Shown: positions 2,570-49,101 of the stretch, piece after piece
Layout: each line of letters begins with the position of its first letter
Numbering within the stretch: position 1 is the first letter of the stretch
NCBI GenBank assembly: GCA_029953675.1
Contig: JAMWBK010000002.1
Location: 682,001-746,000 of the forward strand
Direction of reading: 5' to 3'
Source: Rhodosorus marinus CCMP1338
Lineage: Eukaryota; Plantae; Rhodophyta
DNA length: 64,000 nucleotides
Position numbers and translations under genes: made by a program
Notes under the pieces: model-generated
Told to the model about the DNA's origin: nothing
Databases searched by the model: none
What the model saw: the letters and a program-made list of their open reading frames with translations, nothing else

Positions 2570-3657
2570 ATGGAGACAGGATTTGTTGCGGGGGTTTGCG
2601 GGCATCGGTTGCCTGGGAGGGGACGGCAGGTGTGTGGTCGTTCTGGTGAGGGCGATTCTCTGGGCTTGTCGGGGAGCGTCAGAAGAGTGCAGGTGCGGCG
2701 ATGGAGAGGGCAAGGTGTTCGGTGTCTAGCGGAGAATGGCCAGGAGGCGGGGACTAGCGCAGCGGTTAGCAAACCTCTGCGTTTGGAACGAGGCGAGATG
2801 CGGGCGAAGGGGAAGTTGAAGAAGACCACCTCGCTGGGCTCCCTCGGACTGGATATGTATGGACCGGAAAACACTCCTGTAAATGTTACCCTCGTCGTGA
2901 AGAAGGTGCGTTCGGATTTCTACGTAAGAGGGACAGTGAAATCGAAGCTCGTCTGTCGATGTGATCGGTGCGGATCGGATTACGAACATAGAGGTAAAAG
3001 CTCAATAGAAGTCTGGCTCGCAACAAGCGCTGACGGGGTGAGTAGAATTTTACCCCAAAACTCGGAGCACATTGCTTCCAAACCGCAAGCAGACTATTCC
3101 AGACCCGATATCTAACGCAGGACCTACTCGGACGTTAGGAGCCTAAGCTTGCTTCAGAGGAGGACACCCGGGCCGATGAAGCTGTTGTACACTTCACGAA
3201 TGATATGGATCATGTAGATCTCGCCCCGCATATTGTGGATGGCGTAGCAATTTCACTCCCCTTGAAGAAACTGTGCCGGAATGATTGCAGAGGAGATTTA
3301 CCAACGGAGGTGGGCTCTTATCTTGGGGACAACTTGATTACATTTTCTACGCGATGTACTAATCCGGCGGGCTGTCCGTGTTTTCTTTGAACTCTCTCTC
3401 TCTCTCTCTCTCTCTTATGTCTCCAGGGATTGCCTAGTGGTCTGGATGTAGAGTTCCTGACCCCGTCGGGGATTTCCGACGACGAAGAGTTCATGGAAGA
3501 CGAGGATCTTTTCGAGGACATGGAAACGGGCTTGTCTGAACAACAGCGCAAGCTATTTCGTGATCCAAACCAGGTTGAGCCGCTGGAACATAAGCTGGAT
3601 CCTGAGACCGTTGCTATGCTCCGGGAGTGGGAACGAGAACTTCGCGAAAAGGACTAG
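2570..3657 (+). CDS. DUF177/YceD family protein, plastid-targeted
   Basis: Exons 2570-3037, 3139-3309, 3427-3657 join in phase 0; CRCDRC and LPLKKLCRNDCRG motifs of DUF177; transit peptide METGFVAG. Confidence 0.85.
3392..3415 (+). repeat. (CT)12 microsatellite in intron 2 of the DUF177 gene
   Basis: Read directly; it forms the polypyrimidine tract before the 3426 acceptor. Confidence 0.95.
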
Positions 3658-3884
3658 TTGGGCAATCCGGAAACATTTTGACGATAAAAGAAACTGTATT
3701 TGGGAGGAAGCAAGCTGCCTCCTTTTGTTTGTAAAAGAAATTTTTTGTGTCGGAATTCCTTTGCTTTTAGTTTGGCTCTTGCTCTCAGAGGACATCGAGA
3801 TCGCTTCACCCTCATCAACTGTACATTTCGCTTGTCGAAAACCTGTTCTCAACCGTCACAATTTTCCAGTCTCCTTTCGATTGA

Positions 3885-4290
3885 TTAACCATTGGCATTC
3901 TCTTGCAATCCCTCATCGCTTGGGCTTGCCTGCTCGTGATCGCCTAGATTATACCTGTCAGCAATATCTTTCTTCTTCACTGCCTCGAGGTATTCTTCCT
4001 TGAACTTCCATGGAAGCTCGATCGAAGCATCATCGTTACCTTCCATAACCTCGTCGATAGACTTCCCCGGAAACTTCATCCCCCAACACTTCTTCATGGC
4101 TTCATTGAGCTCACGGCAGCCATCCAAACCTCCCTCATGATAATACGTTCTGGCCTGATGTCGTATGCTGAGGCAATAGAACACGCTGTCAAACAGATAC
4201 TGACATAGGTTCTTGTCGCCTTTCGCCGCCAAGCGCTTCACCAGCATCAACTCCGTCTCTCCGTCAAAGTAACCTGTGAAGGTTTCTGAT
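3885..4290 (-). CDS. 3' exon of an EMI1/C22orf39 (DUF3128)-like twin CX9C protein; upstream exons (towards about 5050) unresolved
   Basis: CQYLFDSVFYC..YYHEGGLDG-CRELNEAMKKC: two CX9C motifs with the FD..FYC and YY.G pattern recalled for this family. Confidence 0.6.
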
Positions 4291-5186
4291 CTCTGACGTA
4301 CCGGCATCGCATGATATGGATTGAAGCAATCTCAATCCTCTCTGTCTCCAATACCACTGCGCAATGTTCCCTACGACAAGGCGCCCAGGCGGAGCGACGG
4401 TTGGCTGTCCTTGTCCACTATGCGAATGTGATCAAGTGAGCTAGGGAGTTAAGCGGCACCCGAGCTCGGATTGCTCGCCTTTCCCGGTTTTGAGCTCGGC
4501 GGGAGAACGCCTTCGTCTGGAAAGAAATTCTGATTTGAAGGAGTACTAATTGGAAACCATCTTCCCAACTTGACAATTGCGGATGGCTGCTGGGACCTGA
4601 GGTTCAAATGCAGGCTTTGGGATGAGTTACTCCGTGACTGTCTGATTTCGAAAATTTTGCTCTTCATGTGGATTGATGCTTTTTGAACGGTGCGAGTGAT
4701 GGAATGCTATCAGATCCTCGAGGCGCTGAGCTCGGCAAAGCAAAAGCTGACGCACATCGTAGACGAACCGATTTTTTTCGTTGGCATCTCACCTCACGGA
4801 ACGAGGCCCACATGGCGGTTTACTCTAATGAAAATACAGGCTAGCATATCATGCGGCGGTGGCTTTTCGTACTTTGCTGTAACCCCAGAAACCTCCGAAA
4901 CGGACAAGCGCTAAATTAGAGAGCCTGAGAAAAAGTCACATTCGGATGGACCAACATACTTGATCTACACCAGTTCAGTCAGCAAAACGCCCGGTAAATG
5001 CCTTCAAGTCGTATGTTTTTGCCTCTCAGTCCGTAAAGACAAGCCATCTCAGATTATACCAACGCAGTTATCAGCACCCTAGATGAAGCTTGCTGTCGCA
5101 GGCCAGTGATGCACCACTCAACACCTAATCGTCCAGGAGACGACCCAAAAAGGACACACGGAGTACAACGATTTGTCCAATTATAT

Positions 5187-5231
5187 TGACACGTGTCATA
5201 TATATAAATGGATAATTAAAGACGCGTGTCT
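5187..5231. promoter_or_regulatory. Pair of G-box-like palindromes (TGACACGTGTCA, AGACGCGTGTCT) in an AT-rich divergent intergenic core
   Basis: Perfect 12-bp palindrome at 5187-5198 and a one-mismatch copy at 5220-5231; function inferred only. Confidence 0.35.
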
Positions 5232-5415
5232 AATCAATATTGGTAATAATGCTTCTAGGGGTAGACTTTGTAATAGAGATTCACAAATCGTCTATAAATG
5301 TAATAATTAGTAGTAATAGGCATTTTTGTACCCCTTGAGAGTGTATTTTTTATTTTGTGGTTCAGAGGAAGTGAGCTGAGCTCACAAGTCAGTAGACTTC
5401 GCGGAGAGAGAAGCG

Positions 5416-6057
5416 ATGGGAGGGGTTTGGATGGCAATTGCTTTTAGCTCGGATGGAGAAGAGGAAGATGATACGGATTTGCACTCCGAACTGCATCCTA
5501 GCACCTCTAGTGGTGAAGTTAGACTTCCGTCATGAACTAGGGGTTTACATATCGTTAGTTTGGTTTAGGCAGAGCGTTTCGCTTTTTCTTGTTCCGTTTT
5601 CCGTGCTCGATTGGGTCTGAGGTGTTGCTTGGTAGTCACGCCCTAAAGGCTGGAGCCCCGTGGGGGAAAACGCGGTCTCTTCCGCTGATCAATCTAATGG
5701 TAGTGGTTGCATGTTTCACCGAACGCATCGAGTAGATGATTCTCTGGGAGCTGCTCCTTTTCTTTTCCAAAGACGACCGAACGAATCAGTGTGTTAAAAG
5801 TTTCAGTTGAAGATGAATAGTTGAATTCAGGAACGAAGGTGATCCTAATCGTGCCCGGTGCGAACCAGCACCGACTTTCATTAGATGTTTACTACGCCGA
5901 GAAAGCCTCCTCCATGAGATTACCGGTGCGGACAACAGGAGGTTGCGTTGAATACTTTCTAGCGCCTTTATACAGTTCAGATGGTGTACCGTCCAGCTTG
6001 GTGGGGGAGGACGTTGAGCTGGTTCCTTCAAGAGCTATTTATAGGATACTCAACTAA
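5416..6057 (+). CDS. Possible short spliced hypothetical gene or upstream ORFs ahead of lycopene cyclase
   Basis: Acidic short ORF from ATG 5416 and open frame 5821-6057 after an acceptor-like TTCAG; exon joins not resolved. Confidence 0.25.
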
Positions 6058-38216: not shown

Positions 38217-39139
38217 ATGGCGTCGGAATCTGGGAGGGCTGCTCTTCTGTTGAGCAAGCAGCTGAAAGGTGAGAGATCCAAACCCGCGCGAGGTTTTCTT
38301 TCTCGCGCTTGGTGAAGTTTCAGGCGCGATTGAACGCTAACGGAAAGGCGCTCGTTTCATTCGGGGGCGAAAGATCTTCAAAAGAACGGGGCGTCCTTCT
38401 TCTCCGCTGGGCTGGTGGACGACGCGAATCCATTTGAATGGCAAATTATCTTAACTGGTCCGGCCAGTTCACTTTAGTACGCAGTTGGATCTCCCAAGCG
38501 TCTACCTGTTGCCTCAGAAGTGACCTGAGACTTACAAAATTTCCTTTCTTGTGCCTCGAAATTTTCGAAAATGCAGCGAGGGGGGTATGTTTAAGGCTAG
38601 ATTGTCCTTTCCGAAAGACTATCCGTACAAACCCCCCGTCATGAAATTTGTTTCGGAGATGTGGCACCCAAACAGTACGAACCTCCGGCACTATAGCAGT
38701 ATGTCGCCAGACAAGGTGTTCTAACAGGATTGATTGTGGATACCATTTCTTGGACTCAGTTTACAAGGACGGAAAAGTTTGCATCTCAATCCTACACCCG
38801 GCCGGAGATGATCCAAACGCATATGAAATGGCATCCGAGAGATGGTTGCCCGTCCACACGGTTGAAAGCATTTTGAACAGTGTCATCTCTTTGTTGGCAA
38901 GTCCGAACACGGAGTCACCGGCAAATGTCGATGCAGCGGTAAGATGAACCTCTCATCCGAACGCGACGGCATGTCTGCGTGGTGCAGACGAGCTAGCTGT
39001 TCTGACGTCTTCCCGTGTGGTGATGTCCCGTGTCCATTTTTCTTGAATATGAGTGCAGAAGCAAATGAGAGAGGAACCAGATAACTTTAAAAGAAGAGTG
39101 AGGAGAACTGTTGATAAGACCTTGGACGAGGCGTTCTGA
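38217..39139 (+). CDS. UBC7: Ubiquitin-conjugating enzyme E2 G (Ubc7 type)
   Basis: [24 protein letters not shown], acidic insert [23 protein letters not shown]; multi-exon. Confidence 0.95.
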
Positions 39140-40250: not shown

Positions 40251-40911
40251 GCATCCCCCCAAAAAACGGAAAAATGAGTCACGTCAATGTACCATTATTT
40301 TTCAAAAAATAAACTGCAGCCTACATCCAATCAAAAAACACCAATTGTCATATTGTACGCCTCCATTGGTTTTTCTAAAGAATATTTAACAAAAGTACCC
40401 CAAAACCCGATCTTTCATTTTACTATTTTCTACTTGGCCAAAAACATGCCTCACTCGGTAACATTCGTTCACAAATAAAACACATCCACGCGTCCTAAAT
40501 CTAATTCTACCAATGATTTTCATTATCCAACAAATGTAAAATAAATAAATTTCATCCCCCGCACTTAAAGTACTTTGTTTTTTGATTATATTCTTGTGAC
40601 GATATCTGGGTATGTTTTTTTTTTAGGAAATGGTTGGAATTTTTTTTCAGGTTGACAGAGAAGATCTTAGATTTCTTTTTGTTTTCATTCGAAAATCAGC
40701 TTTTCTCAGGAAAGTTATTAATATAATTTTTTTGGTTGTCTGAGAGAGTCGGGCGGATCCTGTCATTGCTATTGACAGCATTCGCCTTTTACTTTCAGAG
40801 ATGAAATGGCGTTTTATAAGAAGAGCTCTTGGGAGAGTTGTTAAGGTGAAAGGTTTTTGGGGAGGAGGAGGAGGTGGACTGGATTTTTTTGTTTTTGAGG
40901 AGGTAGAGGGA

Positions 40912-40934
40912 GTGTGTGTGTGTGTGTGTGTGTG
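40912..40934 (+). repeat. (GT)11 microsatellite in the leader of the DHAR-fusion gene
   Basis: Read directly. Confidence 0.95.
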
Positions 40935-41234
40935 CTTTTGAACGTTGACTGTGGTGTTTCATTTTTAATGGAGAGAGGAGGGTGCACTGGGACTGTCTGA
41001 ATTGTACTTTTTGAAGGGTGATTGGAGATCAGCTTTTGAGTGTTGAATGTGGTGTTTCTTGTTTAAGGGGGAAGAGGAGAGGTGGGAAAAAGGTTGATCT
41101 GATCTGAAAGTTCTTAGAGCTCAACATTTGGTAGATTTATTTCTGTCCTCCTTTTTTTTCGTCCGGGGGAGGGTGGGAGGGAGGGCGAGTGCAAGCTTTT
41201 GCTTGGATTTTTTTTTTGGTTTCTCCCGGAGACT

Positions 41235-44169
41235 ATGGGGGAGGATTTTGTTGCTTTCGCTGGGCTGGGAGTTACTGGCAGGCCTCATAGTGTTGCGAGG
41301 TCTTGCAGATTAGCGAGCAACAGGAGGGGAAGGTATGGGATTGCTCTTTTGGGTGGTCAACGGGTTGTAAGGTTCGCTCAGGCCGTAGATCATGGTGCGT
41401 TGTCGGATTGATCTGGGAGCTTTTTTGCACGGTTCTATGGACCATAGTAACTTTGTGCTTTTCGAGTTTCATCTTTGATAGAGCGGAAGTTAACGAACTG
41501 CTGAACATTTTTGGCCCGCTCTCAATCTCGTTGACTAGGCGGCTCTGGTGACAATGCTGGAGGAGCTGCTGGAGGAGATGAAGGGAATGGGGATGAGGAT
41601 CCAGATGGTGATGATTCAGAGGATAAAATGCGCAGAAATCCCCTGGGTGCGTTAGTTGACAGGCTGTTCACGCTGCTGGGCAGTGTACTTGGCGGTATTA
41701 CGCAGGTTCCGACTCAGATTATTGTCGCAATGACTGCCGTAGCCACTACTCTTCTTAACAACTTTTTTCAAGGGTAATAAGCTCGCCGTTGCAGTTAGCG
41801 CACGGCCGCAGTTCAGCAACTTTCTGACGCCTTTTAAACAACCTCCTCGAAAAACAGACGCTCGAGATTCCGCGACCGACTACTTCAACAGGAAGACAAG
41901 CGCTTGAATGAGCTGGAAGAAAAGCGCATACGAATGTATGAGAGCTACAGGGAGTATTCGGAACCTCTCCTAAAGGCTGCAGCGAAGCTACAGGATCATC
42001 TCTACATTATCGGAAGCCGCAAAGGTATGAAACTATTGAGCTCCCTCTTTGCTGGAATTGTTACGACGGCGTTCCGAGCTAAACAGATTTTTCTTGTTGT
42101 CAGCTAGGGGAAAGGAGGTGCTTGATGACCCAAAGTACTCCGCTTACCTTCTCGGTCGGTTCTTCTGTTATGTGGAGGTCTTCAAACAGCTCTCTCCAAG
42201 CATGACCTTCGGTAAGCCTCGAAGAGATCGAATCTTCTCCAACATCCTAGGCAGAATTCAGGTGCGGATCTAGAGACAGAAGCTGGACAACCCGACAAGT
42301 TTTTTCCAGGCGACCTGTTGGCAATTCGTGAACCTAAAATTCCGGAGGTCAATTCGCAACCAGGTTGTATTAGCCATGGACGAATCGGAGCTTGTTCAAT
42401 TGTACGGAGGAGACAAGCGTTCGAGCAGCATCGAGAATCCTTTCAAGATTCCAGCCCAAGGGCAGGCATCCCTTGGGCAGCTGATGATGAGGGAACGGTG
42501 GCTCGAGTGTAAGCAGTTTGTTGTTGGACTTATGCTCATGGATTTCTTCTCGGCCAGCTCACGGATGCAACTCAACTGCAACTCATTCGAATAGACAAGT
42601 TCAAGGGAGGCAGTCCACACAAGACGTCGACATATGCGCATTCGGGCCTTCACTTTCCTGAGTTTGTCCAACTCTTTGAGGAGAATAGCGAGTTTTCTAG
42701 GTGGTTCGGGCCGCTGGTGGAGTCGCTTCATCCAGATCTTGCCAACAGTACATCTGGGAATCAGAACCTGCGGCTCGGACTTTTCCAGACAGCTCTTGTA
42801 GACTTAGTGGACTTCCTTGATCCGGCTCCAATGTGTACTATTATTCCAGCTTATAGACGGCGTCGGCTCTATACACCTCCGAGGATGGTTTACACGAAAA
42901 TGCCGCAGACATTGGCGTATGTTCCTGAACACATGGCGAAACCTCATTACCGCGCATTGACGAAGAATGGACGTCTTCTTTCTTCTGCTTCGTGTGGTAC
43001 AGAAATATATACTCAGAGGAAGCCGACCAGAGAGATGGTAAGCTGCCGGAAGTTCGGGGAGCCCCGAATACAGTTGACGTTTTCGTGTCTGGCCCAACTG
43101 GGGTGGGTTCCACATTTCACACGCAAGTGAGCAACGTGATTGGCGACTGTCCGTACTCGCACAGGGTATGTATCCGATCACCACTGCAACTTGTTCTTAG
43201 AATGCACATGCCGAAATGTGAGCCATCCTCTGCTTCCCGGACAGGTCTTGCTTGCCTTGGAGGAAAAGGAAGTGAGCTACAACTTGATAACCATCGATCG
43301 CAAGCTGAGACCGTCCTGGTATTATAACGTTCACCCAGAAGCCAAGGTGAGATCGGATGAAGACCTTGGCGCCTGCGCACAAGGGAATGGGAGTGGGATG
43401 TACAAGGCGTAATATCTGGCCTGACGCTTACACAACGAACATCCTATAGGTTCCAGTCATATCACACGATGGAATTTTGATTGAGGAGTCCTCGAACATT
43501 GTGGACTACCTAGAGGAAAAGTTTCCGGAGAAGGTGCTGGCGCAGCGGAATCAAAGTGTCGCAACTGACCCATTCCCAGTGATAGAAAACTTCCGTTCAA
43601 AATTTACGAAGTATATTGAGCACGAACATGAGAAACAGGAGGTATTAGAATCACCGAAACGTTTTCCGGTTGGAAAGCCCTCGTATTGAGGTTGTCTCTC
43701 TGTATTTTATCCATCCGTTCCTTGTCTTGAACTAGTTTATAGAATCTCTGGTATCATTGGACTCAATTCTCCAAACTTTCATCACTACCGAAAGAGGTCC
43801 ATTCTTCGGGGGCAAGAAGCTTTCCGAAGAGGACGTTGTAGTCATGCCATACCTTTATCATATGGAAATCGCAGGAAAAATGGTTCGAGTACGTTGGACA
43901 ATCTGCCTTACCCACAATGAGGTCCTCCGGGAATTGTTCCGCTGTCTACGAAGCCCAAGCTCATAATTCCAATCGCTTCTTCTTCACAGGACTTTGAGCT
44001 TCCATATGGTCTGTTTCCACGTATTAAGAAGTACATGGATGCTATGAAAGTGCACCCGACTTTCCAGAAGACGAAGGCAACGCCAGACAATCTTCTGTTC
44101 GGCTACGTTGAACTTCATGCGGGGATGCATCACGACGAGTTGAGCTCCGTCTCCGATATTCTGGAATAG
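41235..44169 (+). CDS. Plastid-targeted fusion protein (about 646 aa): Gly/Asp linker, hydrophobic segment, uncharacterised domain, DHAR/CLIC-like GST (CPYS)
   Basis: Exons 41235-41394, 41539-41773, 41858-42024, 42104-42261, 42310-42508, 42595-42916, 43003-43037, 43128 (or 43074)-43165, 43245-43346, 43450-43641, 43736-43888, 43990-44169, all phase-compatible; GDCPYSHRVLLALEEK, PEAKVPV, ESSNIVDYLEEKFP. Confidence 0.8.
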
Positions 44170-44545: not shown

Positions 44546-47500
44546 TCAGCGGAAGAACAGGCGAGAAATTAGGAACGTTGCGAGCCCTGATCCTGCTACA
44601 AGCCACGGTTCCCTCCGCTTGCGATTGCGTTCGTTCACATTCAGCAGTTCATTGAGAGTTGTGATCTTTGTATCAGCTGATGCACGCAGTTCTGCGACAG
44701 CTTTCGATTCGTCCCTAGCCCTTGCGAGCTCTTCAGTTGCTTCGCTCAGGTCTTTCCTAGTCTGAGCAAGTTCTTCCCTCAAACCTTCTCCGCCAACCCG
44801 CAGGGATGTGATCTCTTCACCCAACTGGCTGACTTCAGCAGATTTTGCTTCAACCGACCTCTCCAACCTCACAGTGTGATTCAGCGATTTTGACCTCAAC
44901 GAGTTCGTCTCGCCCTCTAGCTTTCGCTTCTCATCCATAAAGGATTGCACCATTCTCCCCAGTCCCTCAACCTCCGAGTACGAAGCTTCAAGTTCGCTCT
45001 CCAGATGCTCAATTGTGGTCTTTAACTTTTCGAATTCACGAGTGGCCGCATGGTATGCATGCTGGAGATATTCCTTTTCTCGCTCGGATTCCTTGACAAT
45101 GTTCGCCAGCTCTGTCTTTTCCTTGATGAGCAATTCTTCCTTGGTCCTAAGCGTTGAGAGGAGCCGCAGTGAAAGGTCGAGGTCCTTCAAAACTTCGTTG
45201 CTCGTCGCAACAACGACTGGTCCCGTTTGACTATCCGGTCCAGACTGCACGATTCCTGCGTCGACAGCAATAAGAGCTTCGTGCAATTCTGCATGAACAA
45301 TTTGGTCAGCTTCCTCTGCCGCACCGCGCTCGCTCGATATTTTCTTAGCGTTCTCAGCTTCTTGCTTTAGCTCATGACAATTCTTCTGTAGCTCAACAAT
45401 AAGTTCATGCTTCGCTGAGGAGTCCTCTATCATTGATGCCAATGACTGCTTCACGGACATTGTTTCTTCCGAATCTGCAATCAGCGACATATCGAGCCTC
45501 TCCAGTCTTTCCAACAGGCTCAGCGACTGACTTCCTCCTTCATTAGGTTGAATTTCTTCGTGATTGACGAGGAACGAGTCTAGCCTACGAAGAATCAGTT
45601 GATCAGCTTCCCATCGCCTGGTTATCGCTTCCATTTCAAGTTTTTCGCTTGCCAGTGCCGTCTCCAGTTTCATCAGCTGTCCCTCAGCTACTTCGGCGTC
45701 AGCAAGCACCACATCAAGCCTTTCCTTCTTCCATGCAAGCGCGTTCTCAGCTCCGCCTAGATCTTTGCTGAGGGAAGCAATTTGTGCTCTGAGCTCCGCA
45801 GTAAGCTCTTCTTGCTGTTCCTTCATTTCTTGCTGCTTCCCGAGCTCACAGTCATATTCACGGCGAGCAGCTTCGAATTGTGAAACGCTTCGGGCCAATT
45901 CCTCAGTCTTCTCCGAAAGAAGCTCCTCCTTGTCCGCAAGCAAGGTCTTCGTCCGGTCGAGTTCCGCGTCAAAGCTAGCGATGTTCTCCCTCAGGACCCA
46001 AATTTCGTTCTCGTAAAATTCCTTTTGTTTCGCCCTCTTTGAGATTTCCTCCTCCAACTCCAGACGAACGGCTTCAAAGTTTTCATTGGCTTTCTCCAGC
46101 TCATCGCTCTTCTGCTTGACAGTCAACTCCGCCCCGTCGAGCAGTTCATTTACTCGAGCCAGATCTGCGTCGGCAGACTTGAGCTTTTGTGTTAGAGTAT
46201 CAACCTGTCCCTCGACATCTACCAGCTTGGCTCCCTTTGACAGCTCAGCTTGCATTTGACTCATCGCGTCCATCAGCTTGAACTTCTCGTTCTCTAGTTT
46301 CTTCCTTCCTCTCTCTGAATCCGCGCGCTCTTGCTCGGATTTGGACAATTTCGCCACCAAAGACTCCAGCTCGGATTCCATTTTCAAGCTCAGCTCCTCG
46401 TAGCTTCCCTTTATTGTGGTTAGGGCGTCCTCTGTAGCCCCTAGTTGCTGTTGCAACTTCTGCTTTTCCTCCAGCGACTGCTCCATGAAGTCAAGCTGAG
46501 CACATGCATTTTCAGCCCTTGCCTCCTCATCCTCGATCTGCTTTAACAATCTCTCTTCCTTCAGGCTAAAGCTCTCCTTATCCTTATGTTGTTGCAGTTT
46601 CATTTCCTCAAGAGTGGAGCTGAGATTCGCGACTCGCGCATTGGCTTTCTCTACCCGCTCGGTGGACACAAATTTCAATTTCTCAATCTCACGATCTCGA
46701 TCCTTTACCGCTGCCTCGGAGTCTTCTACTTTCACTTCAAGCTCCTTCACTTTGTTTTGAGCTTTCTGGGCTTGTTCAGCCCTGGTTTCAATCGTAGCTT
46801 CCAGGTCAGTACATTTTTTTGACAGACCTTCTTTCGCCTTTTCTATCGAATTCATTTCTCGCTGCAAGTCACCTAGAGCCTCTTCCATAGCCGAAAGCCC
46901 CCTATAGGCCTCGTCTACTTTCTCGCGTTCAACTGCCACGTTCTTCTGCAGAGTTTGGTCCTTCAAGATCAAATGTCCTATCTCAGTCTTTAGTTCCTCG
47001 ACCTTTTCGCGGCTTTGCTTCAACTGCAGCTGTGTCTCTCGCAGTTCAGAAGCGTTGCTCTCAGATTCCTCCGCGACTCGGAATTTAATCGCCTCAAGTT
47101 CCTCTTCAAGCTGTTTGATAGTCTCCGAGTTTCCTTCTAGAGCTGAGCTCTTCTGCGCTACGAGGATCGCCGCGCTATTACTCTTCTCACACGCCTCCTG
47201 AAGTCCAATCTCCAACTCAGCAATCTTTCGTGCTTCAGCTTCTACTTGCAACTTGTATTCTTTCCTTTGACTTTCGAGGTCATTATTCGACGTCTGCGCA
47301 CCACTGAGTTCGTGCTTTACTGTTTGCAGCTCTGCCTCTTTTTCGGGGAGAACCCTATTGTTCAAATGCGATAATTGCTTTTCAGCTGTCGCAAGTCTCG
47401 TTCTCAAAGCCGCGATTTCTTCTTTGGCTTCGTCAGATGCTCTTCTAGAACCGTTCAACTCGTTTTCAGCAATCTTAATGGCACGCGCCTTGGATTCGCA

Positions 47501-49101
47501 GTCTTGTTCTAAAAGAGCAATTCTTTCCATTGCGCTCCGTAGATCGATATCTTTCGCTTCTATTGCGCCTTTAAGCTCCTTGCTAGCAAACAGGATCTTT
47601 TCTATTTCATCCCTTCCTTCCTTGAGCGTAGCTTGGATATCCGTTGAGTATTGCTGGCTGCGTTTTAGCTCGTCTTCCATTTGAGCCATTTGCTCTACTG
47701 CCGTGTTGTACGCACTTTTCAATTCGAGCTGTCTCGTGTTCAACTTCTTCGCTTGTGCCTCCTTGTTCATAAATGCTTCGGTCAGGTTGACTCGCTCCGC
47801 GTGCGCCCTTTCCAGCTCTGCAGCTTGTTGTTCAGCCTTGGACATCAGATTTCTCTTCTCCTTCTCCACCGTGTCCAAGTCCGTCAAAAATTTTGCCCTC
47901 ATGCCTTCCGCTTCGGTTTTGCTGTTTTCAAGCTCAGTCTCAGCTCTTGTAACCTTTTCGTGCACCTGGCTTAATTCAATTTCCAACTGTTCAACCAACA
48001 GCGACCGACTTTGAAGGTCATTCTGAAGTTCTTCCAACCGAGTTTCTTTCTTTGCAGCAAGAGCCAGCTGCTTCTCGAGGAGTTTTATCTTCTCTATTGC
48101 ATCGGACCGCTCTTGCTCCGTCTGTTCTAGCCCCGATTTCAACTCCTCTGCATCTGATTCCATGGATTTGACCTTGGCTACCAACTGCAACGCACAGCCG
48201 GAAACATGAGATTTATCCTTCTTAGCACTTGAAAGGAAGTTTCCATACGAATCATATGGATGGCTAGCTTGATATCTGAAGCACACTGAGCGAAACATGG
48301 ACTTCCATTCGCGATCGGCCATCCGATTATGCGAGGAGTTTTGCTCGGGCAAGAAAGTCTGCTTAACTCACCCCCTTTTGCTCAGAAAGTTTCGCCGCCA
48401 GCTCTCTTTTCATACGATCACGCTCTGTTTCAAGGCTTCGTACTGAATTCTGTACGGAAGAATTTCGAAGTTCAAGATCCCTTATAGAAGCTTCAGAGTT
48501 TTCCTTTTCTCTCTCCAACTCTTCCTTCGTACTCATGAGGCGCTTAACTGCTGCCTTCAACTCTGAACTTCTCTCGTCATTACTCGTCGGCGCAGAACTC
48601 GTCTACGGACATGACACGCAAACGAAAAGGCTCAGCAAAGGAACCGCTTTAATGCGATCGAGACTTTTCCTCTCAACTGCGCACCTCTTGATCTATGTTT
48701 GATAGCTTTTGTTTCAACTTTTCAATCATGTCTCGTCGCTCTTTCGCGACCATTCTCTCCGTTTCAAGTTCATCACGGGACTGTTGAATGTTACTTTCCA
48801 ACTCCGCCATCCTGAGGTTGAAAAAATCCATCATCTTGAAGGCGCTCTCCTGCTGACGCTTGAGAGCTTCATCGGAATTCCATTCCTTCGGCTCAGTTGT
48901 GAAAGCGTTTACTTTCCTACGTAACCCATTCAGCTTCTCGTCCTCCTTCTTCGCCGGGCTTTTGGAGGATGATGGCGAGCCTCCACCACTACTGGTAGGA
49001 GGCTCTCCAAAGTCGAAAATCTCGTCCCCATACATTTGTCTATTGCCACAAAAGACGGACTCGCCTCTTAAGTCATCCGGACTGTACTCGAACTCAGAAT
49101 C
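44546..49101 (-). CDS. Very long coiled-coil protein (over 1400 aa) with C-terminal tail anchor; first exon probably about 49150-49520, unresolved
   Basis: 3.6-kb heptad-rich exon plus exons 48363-48560 and 48673-49101; ends PWLVAGSGLATFLISRLFFR. Confidence 0.85.

Follow-up and report, generated by a model that had tools for sequence, protein, structure and literature searches.

In the ascorbate–glutathione cycle, dehydroascorbate reductase (DHAR) is usually regarded as a small and soluble enzyme. The plant and green-algal representatives (AtDHAR1/2/3, OsDHAR, PgDHAR, and CrDHAR; PDB codes 5el8, 5lol, 5d9t, 5evo, and 5xft) are soluble, stand-alone glutathione transferases (GSTs) of about 210–260 residues. 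The origin of DHAR has been placed in the green lineage by one survey (PMC9937507) and in red algae by another (PMC12537018), and an N-terminal fusion is mentioned in neither. Here we describe a gene for such a fusion in a 64,000-nucleotide stretch of the Rhodosorus marinus CCMP1338 assembly (contig JAMWBK010000002.1, positions 682,001–746,000; hereafter the window, to whose first letter all coordinates refer). The gene occupies 41235–44169 on the + strand and encodes a 658-residue protein, in which a GST of apparent DHAR class is preceded by some 400 residues that include a hydrophobic segment and a domain predicted to be all-helical. Our preferred reading, to which we assign a probability of about 0.6, is a plastid-membrane-anchored DHAR-class thiol enzyme with the helical domain as a fixed membrane-proximal module. 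Fusion proteins of this type are already present in public databases, where automatic annotation names them DHAR or "hypothetical", and their architecture is undescribed; a literature search aimed at this architecture found no paper describing it.

The red-algal DHAR-type protein thus has a conserved and putatively membrane-anchored architecture of 650–900 residues, which is found in Stylonematophyceae (Rhodosorus), Bangiales (Pyropia), and a prasinophyte (Cymbomonas). This bears on how and where ascorbate or thiols may be recycled in phycobilisome-containing plastids, and on the ancestry of plant DHARs. The association with a glutathione-dependent redox enzyme would also be the first functional association for a widespread helical-domain family that has neither a Pfam entry nor a solved structure.

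Comparison with DHARs and CLIC proteins

Judged by sequence and predicted fold together, the C-terminal part of the window protein is very probably a DHAR-class GST. It has the two-domain GST fold, made up of a thioredoxin-like N-domain and a helical C-domain, and matches the Pfam families GST_N_3 (1e-16) and CLIC-like_N (7.7e-9), with weaker matches to GST_C. Compared with all PDB sequences, its nine best hits are plant or algal DHARs (2.8e-29 to 1.6e-20), and the other classes follow at 2e-15 (omega GSTs), 1.3e-13 (CLICs), and 1.3e-11 (lambda GSTs). An AF2 model of a 501-residue R. marinus fusion, comprising the helical domain and the GST, has a pLDDT of 82.9 and a pTM of 0.83, and a Foldseek search with the fusion model places DHAR crystal structures first (TM 0.83–0.89, rmsd 2.2–3.0 Å) and CLICs second (TM 0.74–0.81). 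The initial annotation of this DNA, made from the letters alone, had proposed a DHAR-type GST, and the proposal agrees with the plant DHARs being the best matches both by sequence (E 1e-29 to 1e-26) and by fold.

As for the plant and green-algal DHARs, with which it has the GST fold and about 30% identity in common, the window protein carries its catalytic cysteine in a D-C-P-aromatic-S motif that opens helix 1, together with the glutathione-site motifs [KR]-P-x-W, K-V-P-V, and [DE]-S. The roles of the G-site residues are those known from published DHAR structures. Aligned with AtDHAR2, GDC445PYS falls on GDCPFS, with Tyr in place of Phe, and RPSW, KVPVI, and EES fall on KPQW, KVPVV, and ADS, respectively, the last pair with Glu-Ser against Asp-Ser. 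The active-site motif varies among the orthologues, and reads CPFS, CPYS, CPWS, or CPHS. Unlike the plant and green-algal enzymes, which have CPFS or CPFC, the window protein has CPYS, and it ends in a conserved acidic C-terminal tail (...D-I-L-E). Nor is it a stand-alone soluble protein of 210–260 residues, as its GST starts only at about residue 420 of 658, behind the hydrophobic anchor and the helical domain.

CLIC proteins, which associate with membranes, have in common with the window protein the GST subfold and a monothiol active site, and are the second-best structural matches. Their sequence similarity is far weaker (1.3e-13 compared with 2.8e-29 for DHAR), and they have neither a separate N-terminal anchor nor a helical domain. 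The resemblance nevertheless raises an alternative for the function, namely that the GST would not mainly recycle ascorbate, but act as a redox sensor, as a deglutathionylating or thiol-transferase enzyme, or as a CLIC-like module that controls the helical domain or is controlled by it. CLICs being the next-best fold and the Pfam match to CLIC-like_N point in this direction, as does the high pTM of the two-domain model, which suggests an integrated unit. Several family members keep the whole architecture without the catalytic cysteine, and DHAR, omega, and lambda GSTs that possess one are generally active as thiol transferases. The sequence, however, is nearer to DHAR than to CLIC, omega, or lambda proteins by at least 14 orders of magnitude in E-value, and the window protein, like most orthologues, retains both the cysteine and the G-site residues. 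We consider this alternative role somewhat unlikely, and prefer to regard the protein as a DHAR-class thiol enzyme.

The principle that a single hydrophobic segment can tether a normally soluble type of redox enzyme to a membrane is familiar from thylakoid ascorbate peroxidase and from the mPGES2-class GSTs with their N-terminal anchor, although these belong to other families and lack a counterpart to the helical domain. Besides R. marinus, the named carriers of the fusion are Pyropia/Neopyropia yezoensis (KAK1867230.1, "hypothetical protein"), which provides the second red-algal case that the initial annotation had proposed to look for, and, in the green lineage, the prasinophyte Cymbomonas tetramitiformis (KAK3285828.1). 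The latter is machine-named "dhar1, mitochondrial", a name taken over from Arabidopsis DHAR1 that says nothing about location. Because the fusion is found in Pyropia and Cymbomonas too, it should be older than the red algae, or have moved beyond them. A divergent fused member (P0048) has the whole architecture with the motif SPSAES, without a catalytic cysteine.

Gene structure and the fused product

The gene structure, and the fusion as a single protein, are hardly in doubt, since the corresponding protein is encoded by one uninterrupted open reading frame (ORF) in other algae. In locus L001, from the Logan assembly of SRR25757610, a single ORF at about 3511–5688 runs from the presequence through the acidic spacer, the anchor, and the helical domain to the GST. 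Locus L002 has an intron after ...DLIDFL, and the exon that follows combines the GST with the end of the domain (DPLPRTKYARPGLRKRLRLG) and the linker (MPSSLRKLYGELANVRD); the arrangement in L003 is similar. In both L002 and L003 the GST lies directly downstream of the helical domain on the same strand, and the DPxP...R[KR]RL domain end and the MPSSL..LY..L linker are located in the GST exon or immediately beside the GST. All eukaryote representatives read at E ≤ 1e-19 that extend beyond the domain carry the GST.

Comparison of the N-terminal part with 5.8 billion proteins gave only three clusters, two of which are R. marinus proteins derived from MMETSP transcripts; two further word-indexed searches brought the family up to about 17 clusters. 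Full-length fused transcripts from R. marinus are represented by P0015 and P0013. P0015 (UniProt A0A7S3A3S5, 657 residues, machine-named "glutathione dehydrogenase (ascorbate)") is collinear with the window protein over the whole length, from the initial Met to the final Glu, the alignment having one gap, of one residue, and the middle domains of the window protein and the R. marinus orthologue are 87% identical.

In the window, the helical domain is joined to the GST by excision of intron 6 (42917–43002, + strand, 86 nt, GTATGT...TACAG). The splice from 42917 to 43003 gives ...PQTLA|NIYSEEADQRDG..., and the junction in P0002 and P0015, two proteins from R. marinus transcripts, is identical (...KLPQTLA|NIYSEEADQRDG...). 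A conserved linker motif, MPxxLxxxYxxxxxxRD, straddles the intron, and therefore only the spliced product rebuilds it. The frame of GDCPYS is open from 42929 to 43324 and contains no ATG before the motif, whereas the sole ATG within intron 6 (42967) lies in a different frame from the GST and runs into a stop after 26 codons. If intron 6 is retained, the upstream frame of exon 6 instead stays open to a stop at 43128–43130.

This last feature would permit two products, with a main transcript that keeps intron 6 and yields a domain-only protein ending at 43128–43130, and a GST that is made separately. Retained-intron forms do occur in the R. marinus MMETSP assembly, where at least five isoforms of the orthologue are of this kind (P0001, P0005, P0006, P0011, and P0012). 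In this Trinity assembly, P0001 and P0006 are retained-intron forms of 310 residues, and P0005 is a GST-only ORF of 274 residues that begins at an intronic ATG. Intron retention is, however, frequent in de novo transcriptome assemblies, and the same R. marinus material contains the fused full-length transcripts. The two-product scheme is also difficult to reconcile with the linker motif, which splicing alone restores, with the single intronless ORF in other species, and with the window GST frame, which has no ATG of its own ahead of GDCPYS. Because the ATG of intron 6 is in frame with the GST in the R. marinus transcripts (MDVFFYLPRVYR|NIYSEE) and out of frame in the window, a GST-only product is conceivable in the former but not in the latter. 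Two separate products are, in our judgment, very improbable, and we retain the single fused protein. The initial annotation had anticipated the fusion, the 42917 donor with its acceptor at 43002, and the lack of an ATG in the GST frame; the orthologous full-length transcript with the same junction, the single ORF of L001, the shared exon of L002, and inspection of the ORFs concur with it on these points.

The exon model was derived by enumerating frame-keeping GT..AG pairs, after which two junctions were corrected against relatives. It comprises 11 exons on the + strand, from the ATG at 41235 to the stop at 44167–44169, with introns of 79–144 nt, and replaces the 12 exons and approximately 646 residues estimated initially. 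Every part of the architecture that had been outlined at that stage, i.e., a Phe-containing presequence, a Gly/Asp spacer, a hydrophobic segment, a domain of some 250 residues, and the GST, is present. Exon 1 (41235–41394, residues 1–54) contains the start codon and the presequence MGEDFVAFAGLGV, in which residues 5 and 8 are Phe. Exon 2 (41539–41773, residues 54–132) encodes the acidic Gly/Asp-rich spacer, to 41627, and then the hydrophobic LGALVDRLFTLLGSVLGGITQVPTQIIVAMTAVATTLLNNFF (41643–41768), while exon 3 (41858–42024, residues 132–188) provides a basic coiled-coil stretch and opens the helical domain (YREYSEPLLKAAAKLQDHLY). The domain motifs YSAYLLGRFFCYVEVFKQ and FGKPRRDRIFSNILGRIQ are located in exon 4 (42104–42261, residues 188–240), and FKIPAQGQASLGQLMMRERW in exon 5 (42364–42508, residues 241–289), for which the acceptor was corrected from 42310 to 42364. 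Exon 6 (42595–42916, residues 289–396) covers the second half of the domain (FPEFVQLFEENSEFSRWFGPL, LFQTALVDLVDFLDPAP, and RRRRL) and the first part of the linker helix (MPQTLA).

Beyond intron 6, exon 7 (43003–43165, residues 396–450) encodes the remainder of the linker helix (NIYSEEADQRD), strand β1 of the GST (VDVFVSG), and the catalytic motif GDCPYS at 43142–43159, with the Cys445 codon at 43148–43150. The GST N-domain continues in exon 8 (43245–43346, residues 451–484; LLALEEKEVSY...RPSWYYNVHPEAK) and exon 9 (43450–43641, residues 485–548; VPVISHDGILIEESSNIVDYLEEKFPE), the latter also containing the start of the C-domain. The C-domain extends through exon 10 (43736–43888, residues 549–599; PFFGGKKLSEEDVVVMPYLYHMEIAG) to exon 11 (43990–44169, residues 600–658 and the stop), which ends in the C-terminal tail ...SSVSDILE; a tail of the form [LI]-x-D-[IL]-L-E is found in relatives as well.

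Two junctions deserve comment. The donor of intron 1 is a weak GTGCGT at 41395, which is the sole donor that keeps the phase, and with which the N-terminus matches that of R. marinus P0015. The stronger-looking donors GTATGG (41333) and GTAAGG (41367) would not join exon 2 in phase and were rejected. Intron 4 ends at 42363 and yields GRIQ|VVLAMD, where the relatives read GRIQ|V[IV]LAMD; an acceptor at 42309/42310 would add 18 residues that are not present in relatives. The minus strand of the gene region has only featureless ORFs of at most 126 residues, and no competing gene.

The helical domain and its prokaryotic relatives

The middle domain comprises about 210 residues, and G141, P143, D146, and the NILGRIQ motif are invariant in alignment A1. 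The N-terminal 414 residues of the window protein have no match in Pfam or NCBIfam, and a profile of the middle domain compared with PDB sequences gave only noise (E > 0.6). The AF2 model of the domain alone is all-helical (pLDDT 76, pTM 0.77), and a Foldseek search with it against the PDB and BFVD found no matching fold (best E 0.39, TM < 0.3). The domain had been called uncharacterised in the initial annotation, and these four comparisons leave that description unchanged.

For the exhaustive profile search, as well as for AF2, the R. marinus orthologue was used as the first row in place of the spliced window protein. Among 1.84 billion representatives, 366 proteins were found at E ≤ 1e-3. 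The proteins with the best scores, a tier from E 1e-104 to about 1e-19, are eukaryotic, and those of them read that extend past the domain carry the GST, with lengths of 516–905 residues; the full-length forms in this tier have 717–905 residues. Below about 1e-14 there are many proteins of 240–400 residues, in which the same domain, its motifs collinear, comes after an N-terminal hydrophobic helix. The volvocine green algae have domain proteins without a GST (Gonium KXZ55276.1 and Volvox XP_002953970.1). Some fungus-like domain members (MVDI[AV]SI[IV]...; P0080, P0093, P0100, P0108, P0154, and P0166) have Cys-rich C-termini, with motifs such as CxCxxC and CSCDKCS that are missing from the bacterial and algal members.

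By profile comparison, the middle domain is clearly homologous to this unnamed prokaryotic family. An hhalign comparison of the algal (A2) and bacterial (A3) alignments gives a probability of 99.9 and an E-value of 1.5e-32 over 200 aligned columns, and the unnamed bacterial and algal family of hypothetical proteins, which the domain resembles according to the initial annotation, is hence a real one. As in the window protein, the domain of the prokaryotic, fungal, and algal anchor proteins (e.g., P0082, P0113, and P0073) is positioned directly behind a hydrophobic N-terminal segment, and the motifs Y-x-x-P-L-L-x-A-A, Y-x-x-Y-L-x-G-x-[YF]-L-x-x-V-E, Q-x-A-x-G-E-L-M, E-F...W-F, and Q-x-A-L-x-D-L-[IV]-D-F-L-D-P are collinear. 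Unlike the window fusion, these proteins have neither a GST nor a presequence, are 240–400 residues long, and often have other C-terminal extensions. A Pfam scan of them identified no Pfam family.

With one genome per species, 263 prokaryotic loci, nearly all bacterial, encode a family member, as determined by a search with a narrower, bacterial alignment. The neighbourhood analysis kept 80 of these loci, which represent Actinomycetota (Streptomyces, Solirubrobacterales, and Gaiellaceae), many filamentous Cyanobacteria, Acidobacteria, and Chloroflexi, as well as Thiomargarita, Marithrix, and one metagenome-assembled genome of Methanosarcinales. Profile scores show no preference for a cyanobacterial origin of the algal domain, the medians being 48 bits for cyanobacterial members and 51 for other bacteria. 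The neighbours at the 80 loci are heterogeneous, and there is no conserved partner gene. Seven to eight loci of Solirubrobacterales and Gaiellaceae (L009, L010, L018, L026, L044, L061, and L073, and also L007) have an adjacent gene for a STAND NTPase of about 1200 residues and also a neighbouring SIR2-like gene, and the Pfam families nSTAND1 and WD40 occur among the downstream neighbours at such loci (three members each). These surroundings look like a defence-island setting.

A further comparison concerns the PADLOC model RTasTM (PDLC03799), which represents a membrane protein and is listed among the defence-associated reverse transcriptase (DRT) systems. All 18 of the bacterial relatives scanned match this model (best E 5.5e-9), and the individual matches shown cover the anchor and the helical domain in the same order. 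The window domain and nine other algal fusions have no match in PADLOC at E ≤ 1, and among the most frequent neighbour families at the 80 bacterial loci there is no recurrent reverse transcriptase. RTasTM and the helical-domain family probably belong to one superfamily; the link to the algal domain is by transitivity only, and says nothing on function. From this superfamily a more far-reaching proposal could be made, which we regard as quite improbable. The helical domain would be a domesticated member of a prokaryotic membrane superfamily that includes accessories or effectors of defence reverse transcriptases, and would, in the plastids of Archaeplastida, form a redox-gated membrane device together with the CLIC/DHAR-fold enzyme. 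If so, the device might be a channel controlled by the state of glutathione or ascorbate, or a membrane-remodelling switch, and the fused form, rather than the soluble enzyme, could be ancestral to plant DHARs.

Proposed targeting and function, and surroundings

An F-based motif at the extreme N-terminus has been described as the plastid signal of rhodophytes and glaucophytes (PMC7038456). The window protein starts with MGEDFVAFAG, with Phe at positions 5 and 8, and nearly all full-length relatives have a Phe within the first 2–9 residues (MAFVVP, MFAFIP, MPAFISS, MSAFLVP, MSLCAFVG, and MTSACFLS), followed by a basic, Ser/Thr/Pro-rich stretch. The first 60 residues of the window protein contain eight Lys and Arg, four Asp and Glu, and five Ser and Thr, and two of the acidic residues, E3 and D4, are among the first four. 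The hydrophobic segment covers residues 89–130, and its consensus among the relatives is V-P-x-Q-[IV]-x-[TV]-A-L-I-G, with mean Kyte–Doolittle values of 1.5–2.1; bacterial members likewise begin with a hydrophobic helix. In most members, the 30 residues after the segment are more basic than those before it, and in the window protein the charge is 3 after and −7 before. These sequences are consistent with plastid targeting and membrane tethering, which we infer from them. Since the side following the segment is the more basic one, the positive-inside rule would place the helical domain and the enzyme in the stroma.

The acidic residues at the start (MGED) could alternatively be taken to indicate an anchor in a membrane outside the plastid, i.e., the mitochondrial, endoplasmic reticulum, or plasma membrane. 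The Phe motif and the basic Ser/Thr/Pro-rich stretch are, however, present in nearly all full-length red-algal members and correspond to the described rhodophyte signal (PMC7038456), which makes such a location distinctly unlikely. We accordingly keep to the plastid membrane as the preferred site, but the specific assignments of a plastid-membrane location and a dehydroascorbate reductase role are tentative, and we place them at, or slightly short of, an even chance.

In the arrangement that we propose, the order of parts is an F-motif presequence, an acidic Gly/Asp-rich spacer, a single hydrophobic anchor, a short basic coiled coil, the all-helical domain of about 210 residues, the linker helix MPxxLxxxYxxxxxxRD, and a complete DHAR-class GST with GDC445PYS. 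The nuclear-encoded protein would enter the plastid, where the anchor would fix it in a plastid membrane, and both the helical domain and the enzyme would face the stroma, as would the basic side. Near the membrane, glutathione and Cys445 would then serve in the reduction of dehydroascorbate, or in the deglutathionylation of protein or small-molecule thiols. Judging by the pTM of the AF2 model, the helical domain and the GST may be packed into one unit, in which case the domain would be a fixed membrane-proximal module and not a floppy tether.

Several observations weigh against this proposal. The window protein has CPYS where assayed DHARs have CPFS or CPFC, and for all members of this family DHAR activity is a prediction. 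Some fused paralogues have lost the cysteine, i.e., P0062 with GDDPYS (an MMETSP transcript), P0057 with GDDPHS, and P0078 with SLDPFS, and because of these paralogues the conserved role of the family may be other than catalysis. The contact between the helical domain and the GST has the pTM value as its single basis. With respect to targeting, the presequence opens with M-G-E-D, and transit peptides do not usually have two acidic residues among their first four. The hydrophobic segment is borderline for a membrane span in the window protein (Kyte–Doolittle 1.5) and contains Gln, Thr, and Pro. The charge asymmetry is modest, and several relatives are more basic before the segment than after it. 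Finally, the fused transcripts come from the MMETSP assembly of R. marinus, and not from the genome of the window itself.

The surroundings of the gene differ from those of two other algal contigs, where a gene for a zf-Nse protein (Nse1/Nse2-type zinc finger) lies upstream of the fusion on the opposite strand (L001, 773–1477; L002, 4090–4734); this conserved synteny is not seen in the window. Upstream in the window there is an exon of an E2 ubiquitin-conjugating enzyme (38648–38947, + strand; Pfam UQ_con, 4e-13). Downstream, a convergent single-ORF gene on the minus strand (44546–48352) encodes a coiled-coil protein of 1268 residues with a hydrophobic tail (...WLVAGSGLATFLISRLFFR), which looks tail-anchored, and for which a weak CENP-F_leu_zip match (4e-4) is the only one in Pfam. 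The stops of this ORF and of the fusion gene are 377 bp apart. On the other side, a (GT)n microsatellite at 40914–40935, about 300 bp upstream of the start codon, is part of a G/T-rich stretch (40860–41230) that probably holds the promoter and 5′ untranslated region of the fusion gene.

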